From Orbicella franksi (Eukaryota), in the NCBI GenBank assembly GCA_964199315.1, contig OZ116698.1, positions 36,828,001-36,892,000 of the forward strand: a DNA stretch of 64,000 bases, read 5' to 3'. Each line of letters opens with the position of its first letter. Position 1 is the stretch's first letter. The position numbers and the translations under genes are program-made. The notes under the pieces are model-generated. The model was not told the origin of the DNA. It worked only from the letters and a program-made list of their open reading frames with translations, and made no database searches. This document shows, one piece after another, positions 2,736 through 20,800 of the stretch.

Positions 2736-3043
2736 ATTTTTAACTGCAACATATGCAAGATGTTTTATGTGCATTGTTCACAAAAGTTTACGATGTGCCC
2801 ACCGTTAAGTTAGATCTGAGTTAGCATTCTTTTCACATATATATTTCAAAATTATACAGGATTCAATACATCCTCTTTTTTTCGGTATAAAATACCTGAA
2901 TAACTATTGTACGTAGGTAAAGAATAAATAGAATCGTTATGTCAAGGTGAGTAGAAACTTTTAAAATAAAGGTTGATTGATTGATAGTCGCTACGGTATT
3001 AAAAGCTTTCTGGGGTGTCCCATATGAGTTTTTAACATCTTAC

Positions 3044-3675
3044 ATTACGACTGACTGTTTTAGGAAAATCCTGCAAAGCATATGATCAAAATACATTTTT
3101 CTCCGTTTCCTGTTCCATTTTCCTAACATTGTCTATGTGGCCATATTAAATTGAAGTCTCCATGGTAGCCAAAAACAGTCTTCCAATTTGACAAAAATAT
3201 TCTACCACATCGTCCTCATGTTTCACGTTGCGGTTGACTTTTCTCGTCTTCCAACTCTTCCGGCTTGAGGGGACACAATTCCCTTCATTACGTTAACTTG
3301 AGTTACCATAGCAGTCTTTGTTTGTTGAATCGGAGGCAAAAAGTGAGATCGGCTTGGCCTTGATGCGCTTTCTTCCATGGCCAATTCGTGATCAGCCATG
3401 CTTCCTCTGTGAACGTGCACAGTTTGTTTTCTCTCCACAGACCGTAATCTTTGGTTTATATCGCGAGCTTCTCGAAGTAGTTCATCCAGTTGTTCCTCTG
3501 AAAGTTCGTCCAAGTTTTCTACCAGGCTTTCGTAATCCGGGTCCAATCCAACCGTTTCGTCTCCCGCAGTGTGCTCGTAAATCGCTTTATTACGAACATT
3601 CGAAAACGGGACACGCTGAGCGCTTTTTTCCGACGAGAACAATGGCGATTTTTCGCCATTCTGTGAAGAAGCCAT
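3044..3675 (-). CDS. Hypothetical protein, 5' exons (exon 1 3675-3307, exon 2 3070-3044); later exons uncertain
   Basis: ATG at 3675 opens 123 codons (MASSQNGEK...LDELSEEQLDELLREARDINQRLR...FLPPIQQTKTAM) ending at a GTAACT donor. A 27-nt in-frame exon (DFPKTVSRN) has a tttgcag acceptor and GTAAGA donor. Candidate later exons are 2895-2870 and one starting at 1004 (ctgttaacag acceptor). No family recognised. Confidence 0.7.
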
Positions 3676-4135
3676 GTTTGCAGTATAAAACCGTGTTTGT
3701 CGACAATAAAATGCAAACGCAAATGTCTGTTCAATTGTCGTGAGTACTGAGCAAACACATTTTCCATTGTTTGCAATAAGTTTGCCTATTTCACGCCATA
3801 TGTCTGGTTCTTTTGTTGTCGAATGCCTAGGTTACATGTCATTTTCTCTTTGTCAAACCAGCCAATCAGAGCTCTCGGTACGCACTCCCCAGAGAATATT
3901 CTAAATATGGAAGACGACAGAGCAGTAAGGCCTGGGTATGTTTCACGGGTTTCGCGCTGAAATCGAAACCTCATGAAAGCTGGGTTACGGAATATTTTTG
4001 CTTTTGTCTTCGGATTTCAATGGTAATACCACTTCGTTAACGACAATAATAGAGATCTTTGTCTTCGGTAAGACTGTTTTTGTGATTTGCAACAGTTCAA
4101 GAGACTAAAATGGTGAAGAATTGTAATTTTTGACC
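3676..4135. promoter_or_regulatory. Putative bidirectional promoter between the minus-strand gene and the HLTF-like gene
   Basis: 460 bp, CpG-rich, between divergent ATGs. CCAAT box (ccaatcaga, about 3862) and E2F consensus TTTCGCGC at 3950-3957. Confidence 0.65.
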
Positions 4136-7100
4136 ATGCCCGTCATGGCGGAAGTGGATTTTTTTACAACCATGAACGGCTCGCTGAATACAAGCCTTCA
4201 AGAGGATGATCAATATTGTGATAAAGGTTCTTCACCAGTGAGAAACGAAAACAGCGGTGTCGTAGCTAGCGATCTCGATGGAAAACTGGACAACGGCGAA
4301 CGTAACTCGGCTGGAAATAAATCATTGTCAACCCAAGATGGAGACGTGCCTCAAAATATGGAACAGACTCTCGATTCAGTGGCCGTCGATATGAAGCAAA
4401 CCTCGTCTGAAGTTTCGTTTGACATGCCAAGTGATTTGGGGAATAATGAAGATTCCAAGACGCAGTGTTCTAGCTCAGAGAATCTAGAGTGTAACGGACA
4501 AACATTGATCCTACCAAATGCCTCAAGCCTCGCTCAAACTAACAACTGTGCTTCTGAAATTCTGCAAGTTTCTACAGAACACATTTCAACTGATAAATTA
4601 CCAGATGCGTCCCAAAGCAATGAACACAAATCTGGTTTTCCTTTACCCCTTAATGCATCATTGGTAGACAGTGTCACAACTTCACCCTATTTTATAAGAT
4701 CAGCTAAAAAGGCTCGCCTGTCAAATCCTGTAACACATGAAGATACAGCAGCTCAAAGTACAACTTGTTCTTTTGTCACGCCAGGAACGCCTACCACTAG
4801 TTTTCTTGCAAATTCCACAAAATCTGTAACAACATTTGCTATTGCAATGCCTGAAAGCATTAAACCAGCAGCGACAATTTCAGCCCCAGCTGTAGCACAA
4901 GATGTCTCAAAAATCACTGCTGTTACTTGTGTAAGAACATCATCCAACAGTAGCCTTTCAAATTCCTCAAAACCTATAACAACATTTGCTATTTCACTGC
5001 ATGAAAGCAATGAACCAGCTGCGACAATTTTAGCTCCAACTGGAGCATCAGATGTCTTGCAAACCACTGCCGTCACTCATGTTGTGACTCCTCAAATGTT
5101 GGCGCAAGCTCTTGCTATGTGCACCTTGCCAATGAATGCTTCAGCAACCAGCACTATGGCAGGGAATTCTAGTACACCATTGGCTATTCCAAGTTTGGCT
5201 AACAAAGTAGAGGATCTGGAACCAACTTCAATATCAAATAACATGGCAACCATCTCTAGGCCATCTTTTCCAAGTACCATTACAAGTAATTCTACAGCTT
5301 TGGTTGCAATTCCAGTCCTGACGACAAAGTTAGATCCTGAAGTTTCAAATGGGTCTTCATCTTCAATATCAAATAATGTGGCAACCATCTCAAGCTCATC
5401 TTTTCCAAGTACAAGCAATTCTAAAGCTTTTGTTGCAATTCCTGTACCAATGACAAAGTTAGATCCCGAAGTTCCAATCGCGTCATCAAATGTTACCGCA
5501 AATGTTACACAAACAACAGTTGCTGTCAAACTTTGTGCAGATAATGCTGCATTGGAATCACTGCCAATTGCAAACAGTTCTACTGCCCATCCTGATATTC
5601 CAGCTATTTTTCCAGACTTTACTCCATGCAACAAATGTAACTCTATTCTTGTTTGCTCCTGCCCTGGTCCTTTCAGCACTGGAGAAGGTAGTGGAGCTGT
5701 TCCTAAATGTACAACTTGCCAAGCTAGTTGTCAAGGTGACTGCACATGTAATGGAATGAAAGCAAACCAAGTGAATGATGTAAATTCCTCTGAACAAGAT
5801 GTGAAGCCTCAGATTTTTCCTGTTGTGGTAAGCGAATACGTGTATTGTGAATCCTAGGTATTGTGTTCTAAGGTGACTCTTTTCTCAATGTTTCTCTCCT
5901 ACATGTACATGTACATTGATAACTTTCTGAGGAAGTGCAGGAAAAAATACTAGGCATAAAATGCTACAGACTAATGTAGTTTGCCATTGGTACGTGTAAG
6001 AGAGGAGGTCAGGGGTAGAAACCAGGGTGACTTACATTGTACAAGTTGATAAGCCAACTTCCTAGATGTATGATCCCTGTTGTTGGAACACTTAGGAACT
6101 TTTAGATGCATGTACAGTGTACATCTTGCCTTATCCACAGAATTATGGTAGCATGCAAAGGGCCCCAGTCCCAGGACTAATGTACCGTGCAGCTCAGAAT
6201 TATTCCCAATCACACTGCATGTGCATAGTGTTTATGTACATTTAAGTTCACTTTGGACAGAATGTTAGGAGAATTATACATTTACGATTTTCTTAACATT
6301 TTACCCAGTAGAGTTGTAAAGGGATTCTGACTCCAAATGACCATATTTACCTGTGTACTAAAATAATGATGATATAAATTATGTACTTACTCTTCTATAG
6401 CCACTGAATGTCTTAGACCAACTCTTTGACGGCCTGGTTGAATATGACAAGATAGCAAAAGCTGAGCAACCCGAGGTACATAATTCTATGGGAAATGACT
6501 TAATATGTAAAGATACTTAGATATATTAATATAAATATTTCTGCCATGAACACTGAAGGAAAGTCCCATCTCTGTTTTCATTCAACAAGGTTGTGAGTTT
6601 GGCAATGAAATTGTTATGAATAATGAGATTGTAAGAAGCAAGACTGATGGCGTAGTGTCCATCTCATATGGCCATCTGAATTTAAAAAGTCTGCTCTGCT
6701 TTTCACTTGAAATTATTGAAAAAAAAGTTAAAAAGCATCTTATTAAGGACTGTAACATGAAAAGTGCTAACTACCTTGTACATGGTTGACATGGAAGTAC
6801 AGTACTGCTCAATAGCTTTTGTTTCAATGGTCACACACTAGTGTTGCATCCACAGACTTGAAGAACCATCTTATGCAGCATAATAATTTATTACCGGTAC
6901 ATGATAGTGCATGCACATGAACTTGTACCACACGACAAAAACAGGTTATCCCAGCAAACAATGTAATTAATTTATTCCACTGACAGGCCATTACCACAAG
7001 GCTGTTCCCTTACCAGCTACAAGCTCTAAACTGGATGATAACAAGAGAAAACAATACTGATCTAGCTGCATTCTGGACACAAGTCAACAAGAACACATGG

Positions 7101-10100
7101 TTTAACAAGGGAACAAACTGGTCCACTGACAGAAAGCCTAACTCTCCCAAAGGTGGCATACTAGCAGATGATATGGGGCTTGGAAAGACTCTTACTGTTA
7201 TCACCCTGATTATGGCCAATCACCTTAATGGAAAGCCAATGTTCTCTAGGCGGTCATCAACTAAGGTTGGTTAAATTGTGTACTTATTAATGGTTATTTG
7301 TTTTTAAATGAGCTAAGAAATAAGCATACAGTAAGTAATTTTTGAAAAATCTCTCAAAATTGCACAAGTTGTCAGGCTAGTGCAATTAATAGAATTTTCA
7401 AATAACAATAGTTTTCATACAGCAACTAATTTATTGTGTGAAAATTACAGCTGTGCCTGTATAATTTGCACTGCAGTGAATATTAAAAATTAATGATGAA
7501 TTTGCCTGCTCTCAGCGATCACAATGATGAAATTTTCTCAGTCTTCTGATAAAATATCCAAATACTGGTAACTGACCACTCGCCCAGTGGGGCTTTTCAG
7601 CGCTAATCCAAACAATCGCTGAATGACTAATTGCAGGAGGTAGACCAGTTAACTAATAACAAGGGTGCTAAAGAATTCAACTCAGAACTACAATGTACTG
7701 AGAACTACACCAGCTAGTGGTCAGAGTAGGATTTGAACCTGCAATTTCAAGTCCAGCATCCTAACCATGGCTCGAAAAAACTTGAATTCCAGCTTGCCAT
7801 TAGGACAGTTATCTCTCAAATATTGCTTGCCCTGGCCAAGTCTTAGTTTACTCTTTTGATGATTTAGTTGGCAGACGAATTGCCTGATCACTTGCCCATT
7901 GGGCAAGTGAGAATGAAAAATTACTTGCCCAGAACATTAGGAGAATCTGCTTGTCCTGGACAACATTACTGGACGGCACTTTTTTCGAGCCTTGCTAACC
8001 ACTCAGCTACACTGCGCTATTGTCCATGAGGAATTAATGTAATTTGTGATGATTTTTCCATTCTGTTTTCAAAGAGAGGAGCATCAACTTTAGGCCAAGA
8101 TGGAGAATGTAAATCTGAGCCTGCAGAGAAGATGGCACGCAAAGATAGCGAAAATGGTGACAATGATGGCGATGTTGAAATGGATAACAAAGAAGCAGTG
8201 AAGACAGTAACTATTAAGAAAAGAAAAGAGGTTGGAGACAAAAAGAAAAGGTACTTAATACCAGTGGTAAAGTTCTGAAAGTAACAAAGTGCATTACCTC
8301 TTATTTAGCAATCTCTTTGTACTTGTATCATTGCTTGCAGAGGGTAAATTTTGGGGATTGCTACATGTAGGTACATGTATGGGTACCTCAAATGCATACC
8401 AAATCTTAGTGAAGTTAAAAAAAACAAAACAAAACAATAAAAATGTTCTGAACATGTAGAAAAAAGAAAGGGTTTACTATTGTTGAAATGAATTTCTGTT
8501 ACACCAAACAGAGTCTTGCCTAAGTTGTAGTAAGGATCATTATGATTTAAAACAAAATTCAGAACATTTTGGTTCAGTTTGTTGTATGTGTGTGTTTTAG
8601 TTGTTATATCCATTGTTTCCATTGTTATTTTCTTGTGAAGTTTTGTATGAGGCTGCTTCTTTTCGAAGATCATTTATTTCCAAAGTGTCGCGTCTTTGAA
8701 ATTTGCTGATCAATTAACAACCGTGAAATTTTTCACTTTTTTTGAGGATTGCTACTTTTTTATTACTATAGTGATCTGCTGAGCAGGAAGTTGAGTGGGT
8801 GAATGGGTTGGGGTCTTGCTCTTCCCTCCCCCGCCAGAAAGGTTTGATATCTGTAAGTGTTTTTGCATACCTGCTATGTGTTTCAACATTGTTGAACTGT
8901 TTTGTAACATTTCAGGTTGGCAGACAGTAAAGCTTTAAAACAGCCAGGTTTTAGATTCAGGCAAATGTATCTCTCCAAGTTCTCCAGGTACTGTATGGGT
9001 AGATTTATTTTTTTCGTGATTAAATTTTTCATGATCTCCCAATAAGTCTCTCTAATGTTTTTTTTTTTTTTAAATGTGTTGTTGTACTGATCAGTGTGTT
9101 GTATTCTTGCTCTGATGATGATGATTCTTTTTGTTTACAGCAAAGCAATAAAAAAGGAGAAATTCAAAGAGGAGAAAGAAGTTCCCAAACCTAAAAAATC
9201 ACCATCACCAATTAGCATTGATACTGATGATAAGGTTGACATGGCTACACCATGGCTGTCTGCTGGCAAACGCAGTGTTAGTGCAAATGGAACTAACAGC
9301 AACAAATCTCAATCAGATGACGAGCACGGTGCTACATTGATTGTGTGCCCACTGTCTGTGCTTAGTAACTGGACAGTAAGTGTTGAAAATAAACTCAATG
9401 TTAAGTCCCCTTGTTTATTCCTTTTTTAAACTCTACCCTCACTCCTCAGCACTAAAAAAAACCTTGAATTCAACTGTGCTATTGGACAAGCAGCTCCAAA
9501 CTTTTTCTTGCCCTGGGCAAGTCTTAGTTTACTTTTTTTGTTATTTAGTTGGGAGGCAACTTGCCTGGGCCCTCACCCATCAGGCAAATGAGAATGAAAA
9601 GCTCATTGCCTGGTAGGAAAATCTACTTGACCCAGAAGAACGCACAACACTTACTGCTCCTGTGCTTTCAGTAAGACCTGGAACCTTCTAGAGGTCCAGC
9701 CAGTATTCTGTTGTGGATCACCAGCTATACTGATAATGCTACCTACCAGTTTACGAAACTTTGTCCTTTGAAGAAAGTTGTTATGAGCTTCACTTATTGC
9801 TCTCTGACAGGTGCTATGCTCCAGGAGAGCCACTTTCTTCAAATGTTATAGAAAGCACTGCCCCAGCCCCCTTTATTTGAGTCACCCTGTACTTTGCCCG
9901 TTGAGTTAGATCCCTGCTCAGTTCTCGTGTGTTTAGCCCCACTCTATTTGCAGTAAGCCCCTTTAATATATTTCACTCCGACTATTTACATGTACAGCTG
10001 TATCCCCCTCTATTTACACCCTTCCCCAACACCATCTCCCTGGACTCTTTTAATACTTGTCTTCTAGTGACATGGTATAATAATCTAGGCCCATTTTTGT

Positions 10101-13100
10101 ACTCCTCTTGGTAGCCCACTATGTCTAAACCCCTGTATTTATGCCCAATATTCCTCTACCTCTTCTAGTTAGCTTCTGGGAGTAGAAACAAAAGAACCTG
10201 CCTCTTTTGTCCCCAAAGAGCTGTCCATTTCCTGTGTAGTGCTAAACAGTGTCTTGACCATGCATCTCCCTTTTTTCTAGTAATTCATGTCAAGTGGAAT
10301 CACTTCTGTATCATTGACTTCTATCTTCTCTCTAACATGTACATGTAAAATCTATGTGAAAACATTGTGTTGATCAGCTGTTGTTTTGTGCTTTTTGTAG
10401 GACCAGATATGCAGCCATGTTCACCCAGATGTCAGTCTGCAAGTTTACATGTATTATGGAGCAGAGCGATTGAGAGATGTGAAATTTCTTAGACAACAGG
10501 ACATTGTACTGACAACATATCCTACACTGACTAATGACTACAGCAGGGTGAGTATTGACACTGTACATGTATGTCCTCTGCTGTTCTGTTGTCTGTCAGC
10601 ACTCAGGTGATGCTCAAGTGTCATAAAAGCACCTGTCATAAAATCCACTGTACATAGTCTCATAACATATTTTAACTTGGATTTCAATTTTACTATTGTA
10701 AATAGCTATAGGTTTTTTTTTTTTTTTTTTTTTTTGGTAGTATTTTCTTCTAATTTAACTCGTTTTTGTTACGTCCCCGTATTAGTAGGGGAGTTTTTCC
10801 CCAGCTAGGTGGTTGATGACATTCTTAATAAAGTTTCTATCTATCTATCTATCAGTAGAGATCTTTGTGAGCATGGAATACATGTAAGTTGTTTACAGAC
10901 TTGTATGTCCTATTCAACCTGTTCACGCAGTTTTATTTACTTGACTGTAAGATGTGGTTTACCAATAATTATACATGTACTTAATCAGAAACATGGTGTA
11001 AAACAGTGACTGTTATTTGATCACAAGCTTGTTTCTCTAGTAAACTGACCTGTGGCCAAGTTATCGGAGATTGCTGCCTGTTGATGTCAGTTTGCAATTT
11101 TCTGTTTGTTTTTCCAGTTTTGTGTTTGGAGATGTGAAGAACTATTGAAGATGTAAAAGTTTTCTTCCTAAGTAAATTTGTTGTTATATTTCTGCTTTCT
11201 TGGTCAAAATAATTCCCTAGGAACTCAGAACGTTAAATTGCTCAGTCAACTTAAGTGTCCATTGCTGAGTGGGTTTTTGATAACAACTTCAGGGATACAT
11301 GTTGGAAGGAAAACGATCGTGGACAGTAATAAATTTGCCCGTGCTTATCATGACTTGAGCCTATGTGTGAGCCTGTGTTCATCAAGTTTTCCTAGTATTG
11401 TATTGTATTGTCAGTCATTAATGATTATTATTACAAACTACGTTAATCACTGTACATTGCAGAATGACTCTCCACTTCACAAGATTAAATGGCTGCGCAT
11501 TATCCTAGATGAGGGTCACACTATAAGAAACCCACAGACTCGTCTGACCAAAGCTATGATTGATCTAGCAGCAGAGCGTCGATGGGTCCTGACAGGGACA
11601 CCAATACAAAACAGGCTGGATGACCTGTGGTCCGTGTGCAAATTTCTTCGCATAGAACCATTTGATGACAAGGGCTGGTGGAATTCTGCACTGGCCTCAA
11701 GTGTGAGAAGAGGAGATGAACAAGGCGTCAAGTAGGCTGCTTAACTTTAAGCATAGAATACTTAAAGAAGCTTAGTCTAGTTTGAGTTATTTTGGCCATG
11801 TACACAATTACCTTTGAATTGAGGGAAACCTGGAAATAAAAGTTTACTAAGATATAAGACATAAAAAGAAAACGCCAAAGAGATAATAATTAACCATAAA
11901 GGAAGAAGGATGGCTAAGGATGGTGAAGATTAACACGGACTACAAACGACGAACTGGAAAAATTTAGGCTTAACTTTTCAAAATGCGCAAACCTTTAACT
12001 GTAACGCACATGTAGACCCATTAAATTTCAGTCTGAATTTCAGTGAGTAGCCAGAGGAGACATCTGGCTAGTTTTAATAGCTTTTTTAATACACATAAAC
12101 TGTGCTTGCCAAAGTTGTGAACTGTGTCCCAATTGAGATGAACCTGCAGCCAAGAGCACTGACAATAATTTATTTCTTTTGTAGCGCAGCAAATCAGTGT
12201 ACTGAATAAAGAAAACAAGCTTTTCTCGCTTATTGAAAACCATTTTGATTAACATAGTACAAGGTACCACCCACCGTAGAAATTTGAAAACAGCATTCTC
12301 ACTCTGAAAATGTATCAAAATGTTTTCCGTCCACACTACGCCGGAGAAATATCACCGGTCATTTTGGATATATGAAACGAAAAGCCGGCGTTTCAAAATT
12401 CCTTCGGTTTGAAGACCCTTTACGAAACGAAACTTACAAAACTTTAGAAATATTAAAAGCTGTGTCTTTAAATTTCTCACTTGCAATGATAATTTTTTCT
12501 AACAAAACACCGTCAATCTCGCTTACGATTTGGACGTTGAATTTTTTGGATGCCCATTTCAGGCCGTGATTTAATTTTTGGTATAATACCAATTATCCAG
12601 ACTTTCATTCTGGTGAATTGAGTAAAATACTTTCGAGAGACTTGTCCTTCAAAGTAAAAGAATTGAAACGAATTGAAATGATCTACACCTTTGATTGCAG
12701 TCGTTTACAAAAACTTCTCAAGCACATTTCAATCAGAAGACTCAAGACAGATCAGGACGAGGGAAAACCACTTGTAAAGCTGCCGCCTCGTACAGTGGTC
12801 ATTCAAGAGGTTGAGTTGTCTGACGAGGAGCGGAAATTATACGATGCCATGCAGAACCATGGCCAACTGATCATACGAAGGTAATTTCATACATGTAGTT
12901 TGGCTTTCCTTTAGAAAAGACGATGGCAGATAGGAGTCTGAAATAGAACTGGACGGCGTTTAAAGACATTCAAACGCACGTTTATTATGATTGTCTAGAC
13001 GTGATTGTATGTTCACTAACTAATTATCCTAATCTAAAAAATATTCAATCTACACAAACCCCTATTGACCCTTTAAACTGGACCAGCGGCAAATTTCCCC

Positions 13101-15914
13101 TGACAGTATCAATGGATAAAGCAAGAGAGAAGGTAGTGAGAATCAGGGACATCATCACCAAATAGAAATTTCTATGATCTTTAACAAATTCTCGTAGCTA
13201 GTACCATAAGAAAATGTATGGATATCAGTGGGGTGAGTTTGTATCATGATCCACCTCCCATTTCCTTGCGGGTGTGCGCTTTCCAGCGGTTCAGCTGTGG
13301 TCATTAAAACAAAATGCACGTACAGCTGTACACTGTTAATGAAATAAGTGCAGCAGGGCTTCGTTTGCCATCTCTGCATTTCTTATTTCAGATATCTTCA
13401 AGATGGAACAGTCCTAGCGAAGTACGCGCACTGTTTTGTCATTTTAATGCGTCTCCGCCAGTTGTGTTTACATCCCCAGCTCTGCGCTAAAGAATGCGAA
13501 TCACTACAACATGCACAGAATCTTTTACAAGGTAACTAGGGTAGGCACGGGCCTAACACTGTACAGATGACACTTCACAGTGTTTGGTTAGTCTATAGAT
13601 GTATCCCCTTGATAATCCTCTTTTTATGCTCTTTTTACCAACGCTACGGTTATATTTTACCGGAAAAGACCTGAAAATTTTGAAATCAGTCTTCCCATCA
13701 TTTGTTCTCCTGCTGCTCGTTTTGTGGCTGAGATTGAACAGATCTAGGGCTAGGGTATTGAATATACTGTGAATAAGCAATGGTCTACCTTTGGCCAAAA
13801 ACATATGCTCGGATATTTTTCCGCGGTCATCGGAGAGCGAAGCATTCGAGGAAACTAGCAAACTTCGAGGGACAAATAATGTCCAAAGACAAATGTCGGA
13901 GCATCTTTTCACGCCAATGGGGTGTTACTGCGTGTATTATTCTTCAAACATTTTTAGATAAGGTCGCTCTTTTGGGGAAACCTCTTCTAAGTCGGTCAAT
14001 GTTAAAATGGTTCTGGGCGCGTGAAAACATTTTGCTAGTTTGCTTGAAATGTTTAGTAAGTTACTCAATCTTGTGACGTATTTGGACCAGTCAAACGCGA
14101 GAAAATATATCTGATGTGTGAATGTGATACTTCAGGGCTAGATGATTCAGATGACGACGATCTCGATGTGGACCACGACACTAACCGACTCATCAAAGAC
14201 CTACTCATGACGTTATCTTCGGGAAGTGACGAAGAATGTTCGGTGTGCCTCGACTCCCTGGTCGAGCCGGTCATCACGCGCTGTGCACATGTCTTTTGCC
14301 AGCAGTGCATTATGGATGTTATGACGTCAGATAACCTTGCTCCTCGCTGCCCGCTCTGCCGTGCGCCGCTAAATGAGAACGAGTTGATTAAAGTTCCCGA
14401 GAAGAAGAAACAGAAACCAGAAGCCAAGAAAACTAACGAGGAACCTGGAGAGTCTGAGAAAAGTTCCAAGGTTTGAGTTTTTTGGAGAGAAGTACTTTTT
14501 TAGAAACCACAAGTAATGTAAGATTTCACATATTTCTGAGGCAGTATATAATTCTCACTATTTAGCAGAAGGGCTTTTTAATAGGAGATCTTTTCTGTTA
14601 ATTAACCGGTCATCTTCTTACAGCAACAGGATAAACATTTTGTCCTGGATTCTGGTTTTACAGCTGTTACTTGAAATTTCTCGGCACCTGGTTGTTTGGG
14701 GCTTTTTAAATATTATTTCCGTATAGTTGTTATTATTGAGCGAAAACAATTTTAAAAAAGTATTTTACAATTTAAGTCACAGTGTTTCTCGTTCTCCGTA
14801 ACTTCTACTCGTGTTTTTAATTAACAATTAGATTATGAGCTCGAGATTTCTCTCATGTGATAGATGACGAGGGCACAGCCCGAGTCAACTATCACGCATA
14901 GAAATTGAGAGCGAAAAATCTAATTGTTTTAGTATAAATCTACTAGTCGTTCAAAACTTTATCTAAATCCTCTTCACAAACACTTCGAAAACGCCAAGAA
15001 GCGGCCCTCAAATTGTTAACAAGGGCACACGTTTTTTTTCCATTTCTTAACTATTACATACTTTAAATTCATGCCAGATTATCAACAATGTATATATTAT
15101 AATAGTGCGCTTGTCACCTTCCATTTCAGCTGGATGCATTGATAGGGGCCTTATGTGCCATCCGAGATAAGGACCCGTCCACAAAGAGCCTTGTAGTGTC
15201 CCAATTCACTTCATTCTTGGATGTTATCGAGAAAGCGCTCAAGAAAGAAGATTTATCCTTTGTCAGGCTGGATGGAAGAATGACCCAAGAAGCGAGGGCC
15301 CGAGCCATAGAGAACTTTTCCAACCCTAGTTCCAGTTCTCCTAGAGTCTTCTTGTTGTCGCTGACAGCTGGGGGAGTGGGTTTGAATCTAACGGCTGCTA
15401 CGCGAGTTTTTCTTATGGACCCGGTATGTTAAGTGAAACGCTGACTGTAAGCTGTTATACCAAGCAAAGGTTTAACTTATAACTTTATAACTTTGATTTT
15501 GTTTGTCACTGCTGTAGGCCTGGAATCCGGCCATTGAGGAGCAGTGTTTCGATCGCAGTCATCGCTTGGGTCAAACACAAGAAGTGATTATCACAAAGGT
15601 TGGTATATTGCATGTTCCTTCTCCCTCGCAAATACTTCAAGTCAGGTTTTAAGTAGCTCGTTTGGTTCAGTCAGAATCCAGTCTGCAAGATTCACCTGAG
15701 CCCTCGTTTTAAACGTCAGTGTCGTGACCATCATTGCGTGACGGAGTGCTTTGTCTTTCAGTACATTGTGATGAATTCCGTGGAAGAGCGCATGCTCAGC
15801 TTGCAGGAACAGAAGCGGACGCTGATGGGCCAGGCCTTCGGTTTACAAACACAGAGTCAGGAAGAACGGAGGCGAGCTCGAGTGCGGGATATCAAGCATC
15901 TGATTGGCCTGTGA
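4136..15914 (+). CDS. HLTF: HLTF/RAD5-like SNF2-family helicase with embedded C3HC4 RING and an atypical N-terminus; 14 coding exons, about 1375 aa
   Basis: Exons: 4136-5827, 6401-6475, 6987-7265, 8075-8250, 8916-8987, 9141-9375, 10401-10547, 11463-11731, 12701-12880, 13392-13531, 14136-14470, 15130-15423, 15518-15598, 15762-15914. All GT-AG, phases compatible, total 4128 nt. Motifs: GGILADDMGLGKT (Walker A), TLIVCPLSVLSNW, LDEGH (Walker B), LTGTPIQN, RING CSVC...CAHVFCQQC...CPLC, SQFT, RLDG, LSLTAGGVGLNL, WNPAIEEQCFDRSHRLGQ. The segment LDQLFDGL...WMITREN...FW matches my recollection of vertebrate HLTF. Confidence 0.93.
7575..7765 (-). mobile_element. Degenerate tRNA-derived SINE (same family as 29378-29603)
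   Basis: Shares ggaggtagaccagtt, agctagtggtcagagtaggatttgaacct and tccagcatcctaacca with the better-preserved copy. Confidence 0.55.
7765..7995. repeat. Interspersed repeat with cttgccc/gggcaag motifs; second partial copy at about 9450-9640
   Basis: Direct similarity between 7770-7960 and 9460-9630 (cttgccctgg(c/g)caagtcttagtttact...gagaatgaaaa). Confidence 0.7.
11763..12005 (-). mobile_element. TTAA-flanked MITE (Kolobok-like), degenerate copy
   Basis: Body matches the copies at 26037-26290, 27474-27690, 35963-36203 and 45568-45793. Confidence 0.7.
14826..14935. repeat. Palindromic MITE (aattagattat...atctaattg); second copy at about 55400-55510
   Basis: Near-identical hairpin element seen twice in the window. 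Confidence 0.75.
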
Positions 15915-17809: not shown

Positions 17810-20800
17810 ATGGCTTCGCTCCTGATATTTTTATTAACTTGCATTTTGTGTCGGGGAATAACAGCAAATTTTAAAGGACCTGACAGATCATACATTCCTA
17901 AATCGGATCTTAAAGGACAAACGGCCCGGTCAGACATGGACAAGGATAAAGCGAATCTCAGGTTAGTGACATAACGCTATTTTTTACGTTTTAACAGTAC
18001 CTGGTAAAAGATGAATGAGTTTAAACACACCAAAAGCTTTCCCCTGCATTTGATGACATTTTGGCGGGATGAATTTTTGTAGCTTGTTTCTGTGAGTAAA
18101 AAATTTTACGTGTTAAGGTTTACCAGCAGAGCACGTTGTTTTTATTTGATACAATATCATTTACTTTCGATCAATGGACTTAATTTATATCTTCTCGTTT
18201 TGACACAAAGCTACAAAGATTTTAAGGTGTTACTGTTAACCGGAAATTCTTTGCCGTCATTGTGACATCCTCTGTTGCCTTCGAAAGGCAAGCGTTGCGT
18301 GACATTCATGAGCTTTTCTCTTTTTTCGGTCGTCACGCAATATTTCTTCCAACTGAAAGCTGCTAAAGCGAAATAATTATAGCAACTCTTAATGGCGAGA
18401 AGAAACAAAAATAACGATCACCACTAGAGTGAGAGAGAATGCGAAAAAGCTTAAGGACATGGGGTACTCAACATAGTTTTAAGTCTTTTACAAGGGGATG
18501 CTCATACCTTGGGTGGAGTGTCCCATGTGAAAAGGTCGGGGAAGCTCGTCGTCTCGTGTCTGGTCTTCTCGCGTATAAATCAAGGATTCTGATCCCACTT
18601 AGGGTGTTGATGACGAAACGCCACTATTTTTTGCTGTCAAAGTATCTTTTAGGGTGGATTTGAAAAAATAATAAAAGAAACGTTCTTATTTCCGTTTTTA
18701 GGCCTGATTTCCGCCGGTTTCTTGACTCCGGTGTACAAGCTCCTTTCTTGAACATTTGTATCTTTTAGGGGTCAAGTTAAGTTCCAGCCACGCCCGGATT
18801 GGTCTCCTTTAGAGGTTTAATTCAATTTTTCTGACGGGCACCCCCGACCTTTCCATATGGGAGTAACCCCTCGGGGCTCATACCCATATCATTATACGCG
18901 TTTTTTTGTTTGGCCCTATCATTTCCTAGCTTCATACAACGAAGGCGGTTGGTTTATGACAATTCAGCAATCCATATTCTAACCTGCGAGCAGGCTCACC
19001 TTTGAGTCACACGCGCGAGCGGCGAGGAGCAAAGCGATTCGGCGGGAAGGAGTCTGGTGTAGAGTCTTGTCTCGCGGCTTTACCGCTTTATTTCGCGCGT
19101 GCTTGTGCTCCAACGTGAGCCCGCTCGCAGGCTATCCATATTCTGTAGCACGGATTTTGTCTAAACTACTCCTTGGGTACCCGAGCTAAGCATTTTTTCT
19201 TTGTTATAGGTTGGTTATTCCATTAATTGATAAAAATGGAGATGGTCAAATATCAGTCGAAGAACTTGCTGCCTGGACAGGCAGGAGTATGAAGAATTTT
19301 TACAAACAAGAGGCCGAGAATCGGCTAAAGACACTGGACACGAATAAAGACGGCAAGGTCTCTTGGGAAGAATATATCAAGGGCGCTGAAAACAGAGGAG
19401 GTCAGTGATAGCGCCCTTTATGTTTGTGTGGGGTCAGGAGGAGGGAGGCTTGGGGGGGGGGTAGGGTGCGTAAAGACTGACTGTACTGTGCTCTAGGAAC
19501 TTTTAAAAATTCTAGGCCTTTATGTACTATGGCAAATACTCCTTTTAGAAACAAGCTTAATGTGTTTTTTATTGCGGATTCAACTGAGCTAGGAATCATT
19601 CTTGAAACATAAATCACGAATACATAAATTGCGAGGATTAAAAATAATAGAACTTTGAAGTTTCTAGCTTGAAGGGTCAATTGTCTCACGATGTTATTTC
19701 GCAGGTTTTACAGAGAAACAAAAAAAGCGCGACAAAAGAAGATTTGATCACGCTAACGCGAAGGAAGACGGTTTACTATCACGTGATGGTTTGATTTCTA
19801 TGTTTCATCCTGAAGAAAATCCAAACATGTTTGAAATCATAGTTGAAGTAAGATTTTGTTGTGTTCTTTGTTCTTTGTAAACCCTGATATATGTATCTTA
19901 TTAACCAACCGTGAAGGCCATACTTTTAGTATATCGAAACGAGGTCCGTACAAAAAAGACCAAACGTTGATATTCTCGCCGTACGTTCCTTGGCAAGCTT
20001 AGTTCAAGAAACTAAAGAACTTAGAATGGTCGCGCGAGATCATTCGGGACAATTCCCGTTCCAATACTCGAGAAATATCGGACCGGCAATGGAGCAATCT
20101 AATTGGTTGATTTAAGTAATTGCCCCTCTGAACTAACTTAGTCGTGTGATAAATAATAGTATAGTCCCTTAACCATAATTAACATGTTTCAGGGCGCTTA
20201 AAAACAATGTGGACTTCCTCACGTCAATGTGCAGATACAACGTTGGTCAAATGTAGCTATTTCAAGCGGTATTTTTTGCGGTTTCTCAGCTCACATTAAT
20301 TTTTGCGGAGTACAACCCTGAAATTTATAAAGATGTACAACGCACGTGCTGATCGCCATTTTGTTTTGAGGCATTTTTGCTGCTTCTTGTATCGCTCGTA
20401 TCTAAGCTCTCCTTGACCACGAGTCAAGAATTAACCGTTGACTGCATGCGAGTTTGAGTTTGTCCTCTGTTACAACGTATATCATTCACGAGACAATGAA
20501 GACTAAGACAGTTGATCCCTCATATAGGCCTTATTCCTAAGGTAATCCGTCTTAAGTTATTTTCAGACGTAATACCCTCTTCTTCTACAGGCGCGTTGCG
20601 TGTGATTAGTTTCGTGGAGAATGAAATTACGCGTGGACTAGCTGTTCACGTGAGTAACATTAGCTTCACAGGATTGGCCATTTCCGAGACTGATAAAGAT
20701 CTAGAAATAACTTAAGAGGGATTTCCTTGGGAATAAAGCCTATATAGGGGATTGACTCTCTTATACCCTTCATCCTCTCCTGACGCACTGTGTAATCTCT

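Follow-up and report, generated by a model that had tools for sequence, protein, structure and literature searches.

HLTF and Rad5 are the textbook case of a SNF2 motor guided by a HIRAN domain to the 3′ end at a stalled fork. Here we examine a 64,000-nucleotide stretch of the Orbicella franksi genome (GenBank assembly GCA_964199315.1, contig OZ116698.1, forward-strand positions 36,828,001 to 36,892,000; hereafter the window, numbered from its first letter), which carries an HLTF-like gene on its plus strand at 4136-15914. A sequence-only reading of this stretch had proposed that the gene encodes an HLTF paralogue with intact ATPase and E3 ligase modules, HLTF similarity beginning at exon 2, and no HIRAN domain, its place being taken by a different N-terminal targeting module on a long, Ser/Thr/Pro-rich and probably disordered first exon. 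Among the checks that it proposed were RNA support for the junction between exons 1 and 2 and a search of the genome for a second, HIRAN-containing HLTF.

A transcribed gene with a complete SNF2-RING core

The in-frame model of the gene has 14 exons with GT-AG at every junction and an uninterrupted frame of 1390 amino acids (aa). The protein had previously been modeled at 1375 aa; the present model includes a 24-aa exon 5 (8916-8987) supported by the loose ends of RNA contigs and by orthologues.

To assess the 5′ part of the gene, RNA contigs from four runs of four studies were compared over positions 3000-8900 of the window; the sequencing runs that match the window carry the label coral metagenome. 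The 5′ ends of these contigs lie at 3934-3985 in all four runs, with adapter sequence touching 3934 in X3, and exons 1-4 are found on single contigs that start at 3934/3935 (X3 record 21, 2476 nt; X12 record 16, 2368 nt). The GT..AG joins 5827|6401, 6475|6987, and 7265|8075 were all seen in the contigs, and the first of these, the junction between exons 1 and 2 for which RNA support had been sought, was present in contigs of each of the four runs. An in-frame TAA at 4124-4126 stands three codons ahead of the ATG at 4136. Because of these contig ends, the in-frame stop, and the RNA joins, we place the protein start at 4136 and regard exon 1 as spliced to the HLTF-like part. The 5′ leader defined by the contig starts (3934-4135) contains four short upstream open reading frames (ATG at 3938, 3973, 4020, and 4110). 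Intron 1, which begins with the exon 1 donor GTAAGC at 5828, is retained in some contigs (records 3, 11, and 17), and the gene is transcribed in many samples.

Exon 1 (4136-5827), an open reading frame (ORF) with homologous ORFs elsewhere, encodes an orphan, Ser/Thr/Pro/Asn-rich region of 564 aa that is predicted to be disordered. The first HLTF-homologous segment is exon 2 (6401-6475), a 25-aa exon, PLNVLDQLFDGLVEYDKIAKAEQPE (PLNVLDQLFDGL...EQPE), that is supported by RNA junctions and by a counterpart in a second HLTF gene on C7, described below; orthologues share it at 80% identity. Exon 3 (6987-7265) holds the Q motif and Walker A, GILADDMGLGKT; it is bounded by RNA junctions, matches Pfam SNF2-rel_dom with 51 bits, and is 85% identical in the homologous locus L013. 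Exon 4 (8075-8250) is an acidic/basic linker placed by the RNA junction 7265|8075 and the model, and loose ends of RNA contigs past 8252 read into the start of exon 5 at 8916, an exon with 92% identity in L013. Exon 6 (9141-9375), which covers the motif Ia region, LIVCPLSVLSNW, follows from the GT-AG in-frame model and from tblastn with an orthologue. Exons 7 (10401-10547), 9 (12701-12880), and 10 (13392-13531) come from the model and are respectively 90%, 85%, and 80% identical in L013. Motifs II (DEGH) and III (TGTP) are encoded by exon 8 (11463-11731; Pfam SNF2-rel_dom, 88 bits), and the best solved relative of this exon is Rad5 (6L8N, 79.6 bits). Exon 11 (14091-14470) encodes a C3HC4 RING between the two ATPase lobes (Pfam zf-C3HC4_2, 45 bits, and other RING models; 75% identity in L013), exon 12 (15130-15423) Helicase_C with motifs IV-V (53.6 bits), and exon 13 (15518-15598) motif VI (QCFDRSHRLGQ), recognized from the translation and 81% identical to the C7 paralogue. 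The gene closes with exon 14 and its TGA stop, placed by the model at 15762-15914.

The resulting Pfam order in the protein is SNF2-rel_dom (exons 3 and 8), RING (exon 11), and Helicase_C (exon 12), so that the RING exon stands between the SNF2-rel_dom exons and Helicase_C, as in HLTF/Rad5. All of the catalytic signatures, comprising GLGKT (Walker A), DEGH, TGTP, QCFDRSHRLGQ, and the C3HC4 RING, are intact.

A separate observation concerns intron 3, where RNA depth is very high over 7570-7990 (summed contig depth of 165-636 in the bin 7728-7924) and many contigs continue into unrelated sequence, as expected of an expressed interspersed repeat within the intron.

No HIRAN in the window, and a canonical HLTF gene elsewhere in the genome

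A six-frame scan of the genome (497 Mb) with Pfam HIRAN returned 97 matches, none of which falls in the 64-kb window. The nearest on the same contig lies approximately 208 kb past the window end, on the opposite strand, with 25 bits. Searching the window by tblastn with the HIRAN exons of the genome's own HLTF gave chance-level matches only (all E>2), and no Pfam family matched any open frame in the leader or in introns 1-3. The proposed absence of HIRAN therefore holds for exon 1, the leader, the introns, and the window as a whole under Pfam, the six-frame scan, and tblastn.

The sought-after second HLTF is present. The best genomic HIRAN match, at C7:7521895-7522128 (79 bits), is the first coding exon of a canonical HIRAN-containing HLTF gene that spans C7:7521.8-7541.4 kb and has two HIRAN exons (HIRAN 77-79 bits). 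Exons of this gene matched window exons 3 and 7-14, mostly with 42-59% identity and with 81% for the 27-aa exon 13, whereas the next-best SNF2 relative in the genome reaches only 34% identity in exon 8. The ends of the C7 matches fall on exon boundaries of the window gene at aa 590, 844, 982, 1042, 1215, 1314, and 1341, giving at least seven common junctions. After its HIRAN exons the C7 gene continues with an exon 'ELDKLFEKLGQNKMATIEPAE' and then 'AIKTVLFPHQKQALAWM...', which correspond to window exon 2 ('NVLDQLFDGLVEYDKIAKAEQPE') followed by exon 3 ('AITTRLFPYQLQALNWM...'); the linker exon 'LDKLFEKL..EPAE' ('ELDKLFEKL..EPAE' in the C7 gene) is thus common to both genes. With the C7 exon 'ELDKLFEKLGQNKMATIEPAE' as the counterpart of window exon 2, the proposal that similarity to HLTF starts there is confirmed.

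Given the exon identities and the at least seven common intron positions, the window gene is, on sequence grounds, a DNA-level duplicate of HLTF in which the HIRAN exons have been replaced by a new first exon and promoter. The sequence-only reading is borne out in its view of the gene as a paralogue, separate from the HIRAN-HLTF on C7 and with all ATPase motifs and the C3HC4 RING intact, and in its view of a different N-terminal module, the 564-aa exon 1 standing in place of the HIRAN exons of the canonical gene.

Of the 97 HIRAN matches, most represent repeated open frames with lengths of about 128-196 aa. At L002:67-1857 (G000:C10:6088870-6092064), for example, a 166-aa HIRAN frame stands head-to-head with a 403-aa pogo/Tigger-like transposase ORF.

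An orphan first exon, predicted to be disordered, with conserved short motifs

Exon 1 is rich in Ser (15%), Thr (11%), Ala (10%), Pro (7%), and Asn (7%), and charged residues make up 14% of it, compared to 29% of the remainder of the protein. It contains two internal duplications. The first, of approximately 47 aa, pairs aa 217-263 with aa 267-313 (4784-5074; local self-alignment score 122), and the second is a tandem duplication of 129 nt (43 aa) present in 1.9 copies at 5226-5477 (Tandem Repeats Finder, 82% matches, score 347; protein self-alignment score 131). Exon 1 matched no Pfam family (E≤1) and no PDB sequence (E≤10), and it is present only once in the genome; the protein atlas gave no usable match for exon 1 and only generic SNF2 fragments for exon 3. 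AlphaFold2, run on an 11-row alignment of exon 1, returned a mean predicted local distance difference test (pLDDT) score of 37 and essentially no secondary structure, and exon 1 is accordingly predicted to be intrinsically disordered. In these respects the earlier description of a 1692-nt, probably disordered first exon with tandem repeats and a Cys cluster is a fair account of the 564 aa at 4136-5827.

Several short segments are conserved within this region. The MAEV start is kept in homologues of exon 1. An SPYF(I/T)RSAKKAR motif at 4682-4717, an aromatic pair followed by a basic patch, is partly conserved in alignment A1: closer homologues keep the core SPYF(T/I)RSAKK, P0002 and P0006 have two copies of the motif, and in the most distant homologues it has degenerated. 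Toward the exon end lies a cluster of eight Cys residues, a candidate zinc-binding element, with the pattern F-x2-C-x-K-C-N-S-x-L-V-C-S-C ... C-x3-C-x-G-x-C-x-C (aa 495-538; 5618-5749), the cysteines themselves occupying aa 498-538 with the spacing C-x2-C-x5-C-x-C...C-x3-C-x3-C-x-C. In an alignment of nine sequences the F, the eight Cys, and the K, N, S, L, V, and G are invariant, and the two halves are separated by 14-18 variable residues. The nine members had no Pfam match and no PDB profile match at E≤10, and the cluster has no other occurrence in the genome. Exon 1 ends in DVKPQIFPVV (5798-5827), abutting the splice donor, in which D, V, K, P, F, and P are invariant in nine sequences; every homologous ORF reads past this donor into a 'VS...' intron read-through. 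The last 94 aa of the exon are 44-66% identical among homologues. We infer that exon 1, predicted to be disordered and conserved only in short motifs, may serve as a targeting module; a zinc- or DNA-binding role for the Cys cluster is a hypothesis suggested by its sequence.

Homologues, conservation, and age of the duplicate

A phmmer search with exon 1 against 1.84 billion representatives returned only 12 proteins, all of them ORFs of 176-755 aa that comprise exon 1 plus intron read-through, and a word-based search with the 755-aa homologue P0002 added eight further exon-1 ORFs. Both searches returned ORFs of the exon-1 type only, for a total of about 20 clusters in which the frame is kept open over 447-769 aa. 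These homologues, whose overall identity to exon 1 of the window is 24-48%, are apparently from other corals; one homologous contig derives from a TARA-labelled metagenome sample.

The arrangement around exon 1 is conserved as well. In the window, a 150-aa ORF with no Pfam family lies on the minus strand at 3223-3675, divergent from the HLTF-like gene, and RNA contigs of this neighbor end at 3772-3888, approximately 50-150 bp from the ends of the HLTF-like transcript. A similarly placed head-to-head ORF of 146-157 aa, matched by position and length, was found in L012, L013, L014, L015, and L023, and this recurrence at the same position in five loci suggests a conserved bidirectional promoter pair. 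Four of these loci (L012, L013, L015, and L023) share the order of head-to-head ORF, exon-1 ORF, and exon 2 (68-81% identity); SNF2 exons follow in L013, L015, and L023, and the RING exon also in L013 and L023, mostly at 65-92% identity. Exon 1 is only 30-34% identical in loci whose downstream exons mostly reach 65-92%. In L013 most core exons are 74-92% identical compared to approximately 30% for exon 1, and on these identities exon 1 is evolving several times faster than the enzyme core and yet is maintained.

We reconstructed a single tree, based on 93 aa of exon 3 (fragments), the libraries having returned ORF fragments only. Window-type sequences formed a clade of 12 clusters with support of 99/98, and deeper nodes were unresolved. 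In exon 3 the canonical coral HLTF is 57% identical to vertebrate-like HLTF fragments versus 48% to the window gene, a difference by which the split may be old. Read from these identities, the duplication could indeed be ancient, or it could be more recent and have been followed by faster change in the new copy. Among the exon-3 fragments, a group of 11 members ('ELPPFWEC..RDYFNTAT', L024) is nearer to the canonical type, whereas the fragments P0024 and P0025 are 58-60% identical to the window type versus 44-49% to the canonical type.

At the locus of P0025 (L020:355-4230; also L021 and L022), which comes from a metagenome, an orphan ORF of 698 aa lies upstream of exon-2-like and exon-3-like HLTF exons; it is rich in Ser and has internal repeats as well as hydrophobic/acidic motifs of the 'IIEIDSSDGS' type. 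The ORF ends at a GTAAGA donor approximately 1.1 kb upstream of the exon-2-like exon, which reads 'KIEEVDKMFEDS...TEPAQ' and is in the same phase. This locus may correspond distantly to the window gene, its N-terminal exon being unalignable; the contig ends 354 nt upstream and is too short to exclude HIRAN there. By eye, the ORF was suspected of starting with the second half of a HIRAN domain, a suspicion that was dropped after BLASTP against the coral HIRAN exon found nothing. The locus is a hint that a long orphan exon may occupy this place in HLTF-like genes outside the clade of alignable exon 1 as well.

Downstream of the HLTF-like gene, plus-strand ORFs at 19211-19408 and 24300-24500 are EF-hand-like (e.g., DKNGDGQISVEELAAWT... 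and DTNKDGKISLDELTAWT...) and look, from their sequences, like two related calcium-binding genes.

Discussion

Taken together, we think it probable that the window holds a real, transcribed, HLTF-derived gene with a complete catalytic core whose HIRAN exons were replaced by the disordered exon 1, and whose product would be a HIRAN-independent translocase-ligase recruited via its N-terminus. In the gene, a single first exon of 564 aa, with a promoter of its own, stands in place of the two HIRAN-coding 5′ exons of canonical HLTF, and the 'LDxLF' linker exon, the complete SNF2 ATPase, and the embedded C3HC4 RING are retained. By analogy with human HLTF, the protein would be an ATP-driven translocase on double-stranded DNA (dsDNA) and a RING E3 ligase, with PCNA as its probable target in concert with Ubc13-Mms2. 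Human HLTF without HIRAN (residues 156-1009) keeps its dsDNA-dependent ATPase, its PCNA polyubiquitin-ligase activity, and most of its translocase activity but cannot reverse model forks, a capacity that purified HIRAN restores in trans (PMC4666394). By the same analogy, HLTF-type fork reversal by the coral protein alone would be unlikely, because HIRAN-mediated capture of a 3′-OH end would be impossible. Recruitment would instead rely on short linear motifs in the N-terminal region together with its Cys cluster, which probably binds zinc, and the protein would act alongside the canonical HIRAN-HLTF retained in the same genome.

Several observations weigh against this interpretation or temper it. 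Of the eight exon-1 variants recorded in RNA contigs, six are non-synonymous, in keeping with weak constraint over most of the exon. The 8-Cys cluster fits none of the known zinc modules (CXC, CXXC, metallothionein-like, etc.) by Pfam or PDB profile, and the 94-aa Cys segment did not fold in AlphaFold2, with pLDDT of approximately 41 and no usable model. Moreover, the second half of the cluster is lost in the most divergent orthologue (L023) and in P0002, and the cluster may therefore not be essential. Exons 6-14 are supported by conservation and splice-site logic rather than by reads placed here, and the attribution of homologous contigs to other corals was drawn from sample types and identity levels. 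The enzymatic and recruitment functions suggested for the coral protein likewise draw on analogy and sequence.

One may go further and postulate that the 8-Cys cluster and its flanking motifs form an undescribed zinc-dependent module for targeting DNA, chromatin, or PCNA that functionally replaces HIRAN, giving reef corals a second, differently aimed HLTF-type translocase-ligase for damage tolerance that perhaps cooperates in trans with stand-alone transposon HIRANs. We regard this elaboration as speculative and rather unlikely.

Somewhat less probable again is an alternative in which the gene belongs to another HIRAN-less SNF2-RING lineage, of the Rad16, Ris1/Uls1/FRG, or SHPRH type, and acts for instance as a SUMO-targeted ligase. 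Such proteins also pair SNF2-RING cores with long disordered N-termini, the deep nodes of the single-exon tree are unresolved, and the greater similarity of canonical coral HLTF to vertebrate-like fragments in exon 3 (57%) than to the window gene (48%) leaves an old split possible. Across all exons, however, the closest relative in the genome is the HIRAN-HLTF, with coinciding intron positions; both genes have the HLTF-specific 'LDxLF...EPAE' linker exon, Rad5 is the best solved relative, and no conserved hydrophobic/acidic motif of the SUMO-interaction type stands out in alignment A1 when inspected by eye.

We consider it very unlikely that the gene is a decaying duplicate, be it a pseudogene or a neutral copy without its own function in which HIRAN was lost by chance. 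The rapid divergence of exon 1 (24-48% identity) and its mostly non-synonymous variants would be consistent with decay, but all 14 exons are open with intact catalytic motifs, and identity across lineages is 74-92% for most of the ATPase, RING, and helicase exons but only approximately 30% for exon 1. In addition, the gene is transcribed in many samples, and exon 1 is open over 447-769 codons in approximately 20 clusters.

The remaining alternatives appear even more remote. HIRAN in the C7 gene sits on small, separate exons, and it is conceivable that such an exon was overlooked in an otherwise ordinary HLTF, whether in an unmodelled upstream exon, behind an alternative promoter, or in an intron; this explanation is already largely refuted by RNA contigs that end at 3934-3985 beside a divergent neighbor, the in-frame stop before the ATG, the lack of HIRAN signal in the 64-kb window, and the separate canonical gene on C7, and we assign it a minimal likelihood. 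Hardly more credible is the idea that exon 1 comes from another gene or from an assembly or read-through artefact and that exon 2 or 3 is the true beginning of the SNF2 gene. In favor of this idea, exon 1 resembles no known family and intron 1 is retained in some RNA contigs; nevertheless, the 5827|6401 GT..AG join occurs in all four runs, the homologous ORFs all end precisely at this donor with DVKPQIFPVV, exon 1 also precedes the SNF2 part in L012, L013, L015, and L023, and exon 2 has no start codon of its own. Lastly, fork remodelling might be regained in trans with stand-alone HIRAN proteins of pogo-type transposons, in keeping with the 97 genomic matches, the 166-aa HIRAN frame that adjoins a pogo-like transposase ORF in L002, and the restoration of fork reversal to HIRAN-deleted human HLTF (PMC4666394), but nothing links the two, they are not co-localized, and the transposon HIRANs are divergent, making this scenario highly improbable.

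The HLTF-derived gene favored here can be compared with several known systems. It shares with HLTF (SMARCA3) of animals and Rad5 of yeasts a SNF2 ATPase with a C3HC4 RING between its lobes, the 'LDxLF...EPAE' linker exon before the Q motif, and the exon-intron structure of the coral's own HLTF. It differs in lacking HIRAN, in having as its N-terminus a 564-aa disordered orphan exon with an 8-Cys cluster, and in its exon 3 signature (APFW..W[FY]N[KQ]GT versus PPFW..[YF]N..T). Its ATPase-RING core and its descent, both read from sequence, place the window gene in the HLTF/Rad5 lineage; lacking HIRAN, it does not qualify as a canonical HLTF/Rad5.

Other SNF2-RING proteins also do without HIRAN. 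SHPRH carries H15 and PHD domains, and Rad16, Ris1/Uls1, and plant FRG1/FRG2 (CHR27/28) are HIRAN-less SNF2-RING proteins of which several have long low-complexity N-termini. The intron positions and linker exon of the window gene point instead to HLTF, and no array of SUMO-interaction motifs is evident by eye. Compared to SHPRH, the scanned pieces of the window gene contain no H15 or PHD Pfam domains, and the gene is much closer to HLTF. Both are nonetheless HIRAN-less SNF2-RING ligases found beside HLTF; SHPRH is reported to be a second PCNA-directed ligase of this kind that coexists with HLTF (e.g., PMC13086300). In its architecture the window gene thus resembles the HIRAN-less SNF2-RING proteins (SHPRH, Rad16, and Ris1/FRG), but judging from its exons it is HLTF-derived. 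The closest parallel in domain content is the HIRAN-deleted human HLTF 156-1009, whose remaining domain set equals that of the coral gene (PMC4666394). That construct is an artificial truncation without a replacement N-terminus and failed to complement HLTF loss in cells (PMC4666394), whereas the coral gene is a natural paralogue that has been conserved and occurs together with a full HLTF.

A cnidarian paralogue of HLTF that lacks HIRAN was not described in any paper that our literature search returned. The coral paralogue is real, expressed, and conserved, and represents a variant within its family rather than a new kind of system. Corals are long-lived and UV-exposed, and their somatic lineages are passed to gametes, for which reasons the means by which they tolerate DNA damage merit attention in themselves. 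The gene is effectively an evolutionary domain-swap experiment in which motor and ligase were kept and HIRAN was exchanged for a disordered region with a Cys motif, and as such it can reveal which HLTF functions are independent of HIRAN, such as PCNA polyubiquitination, protein displacement, and the handling of G-quadruplexes (G4) and R-loops, and how a motor of this family may be re-targeted.

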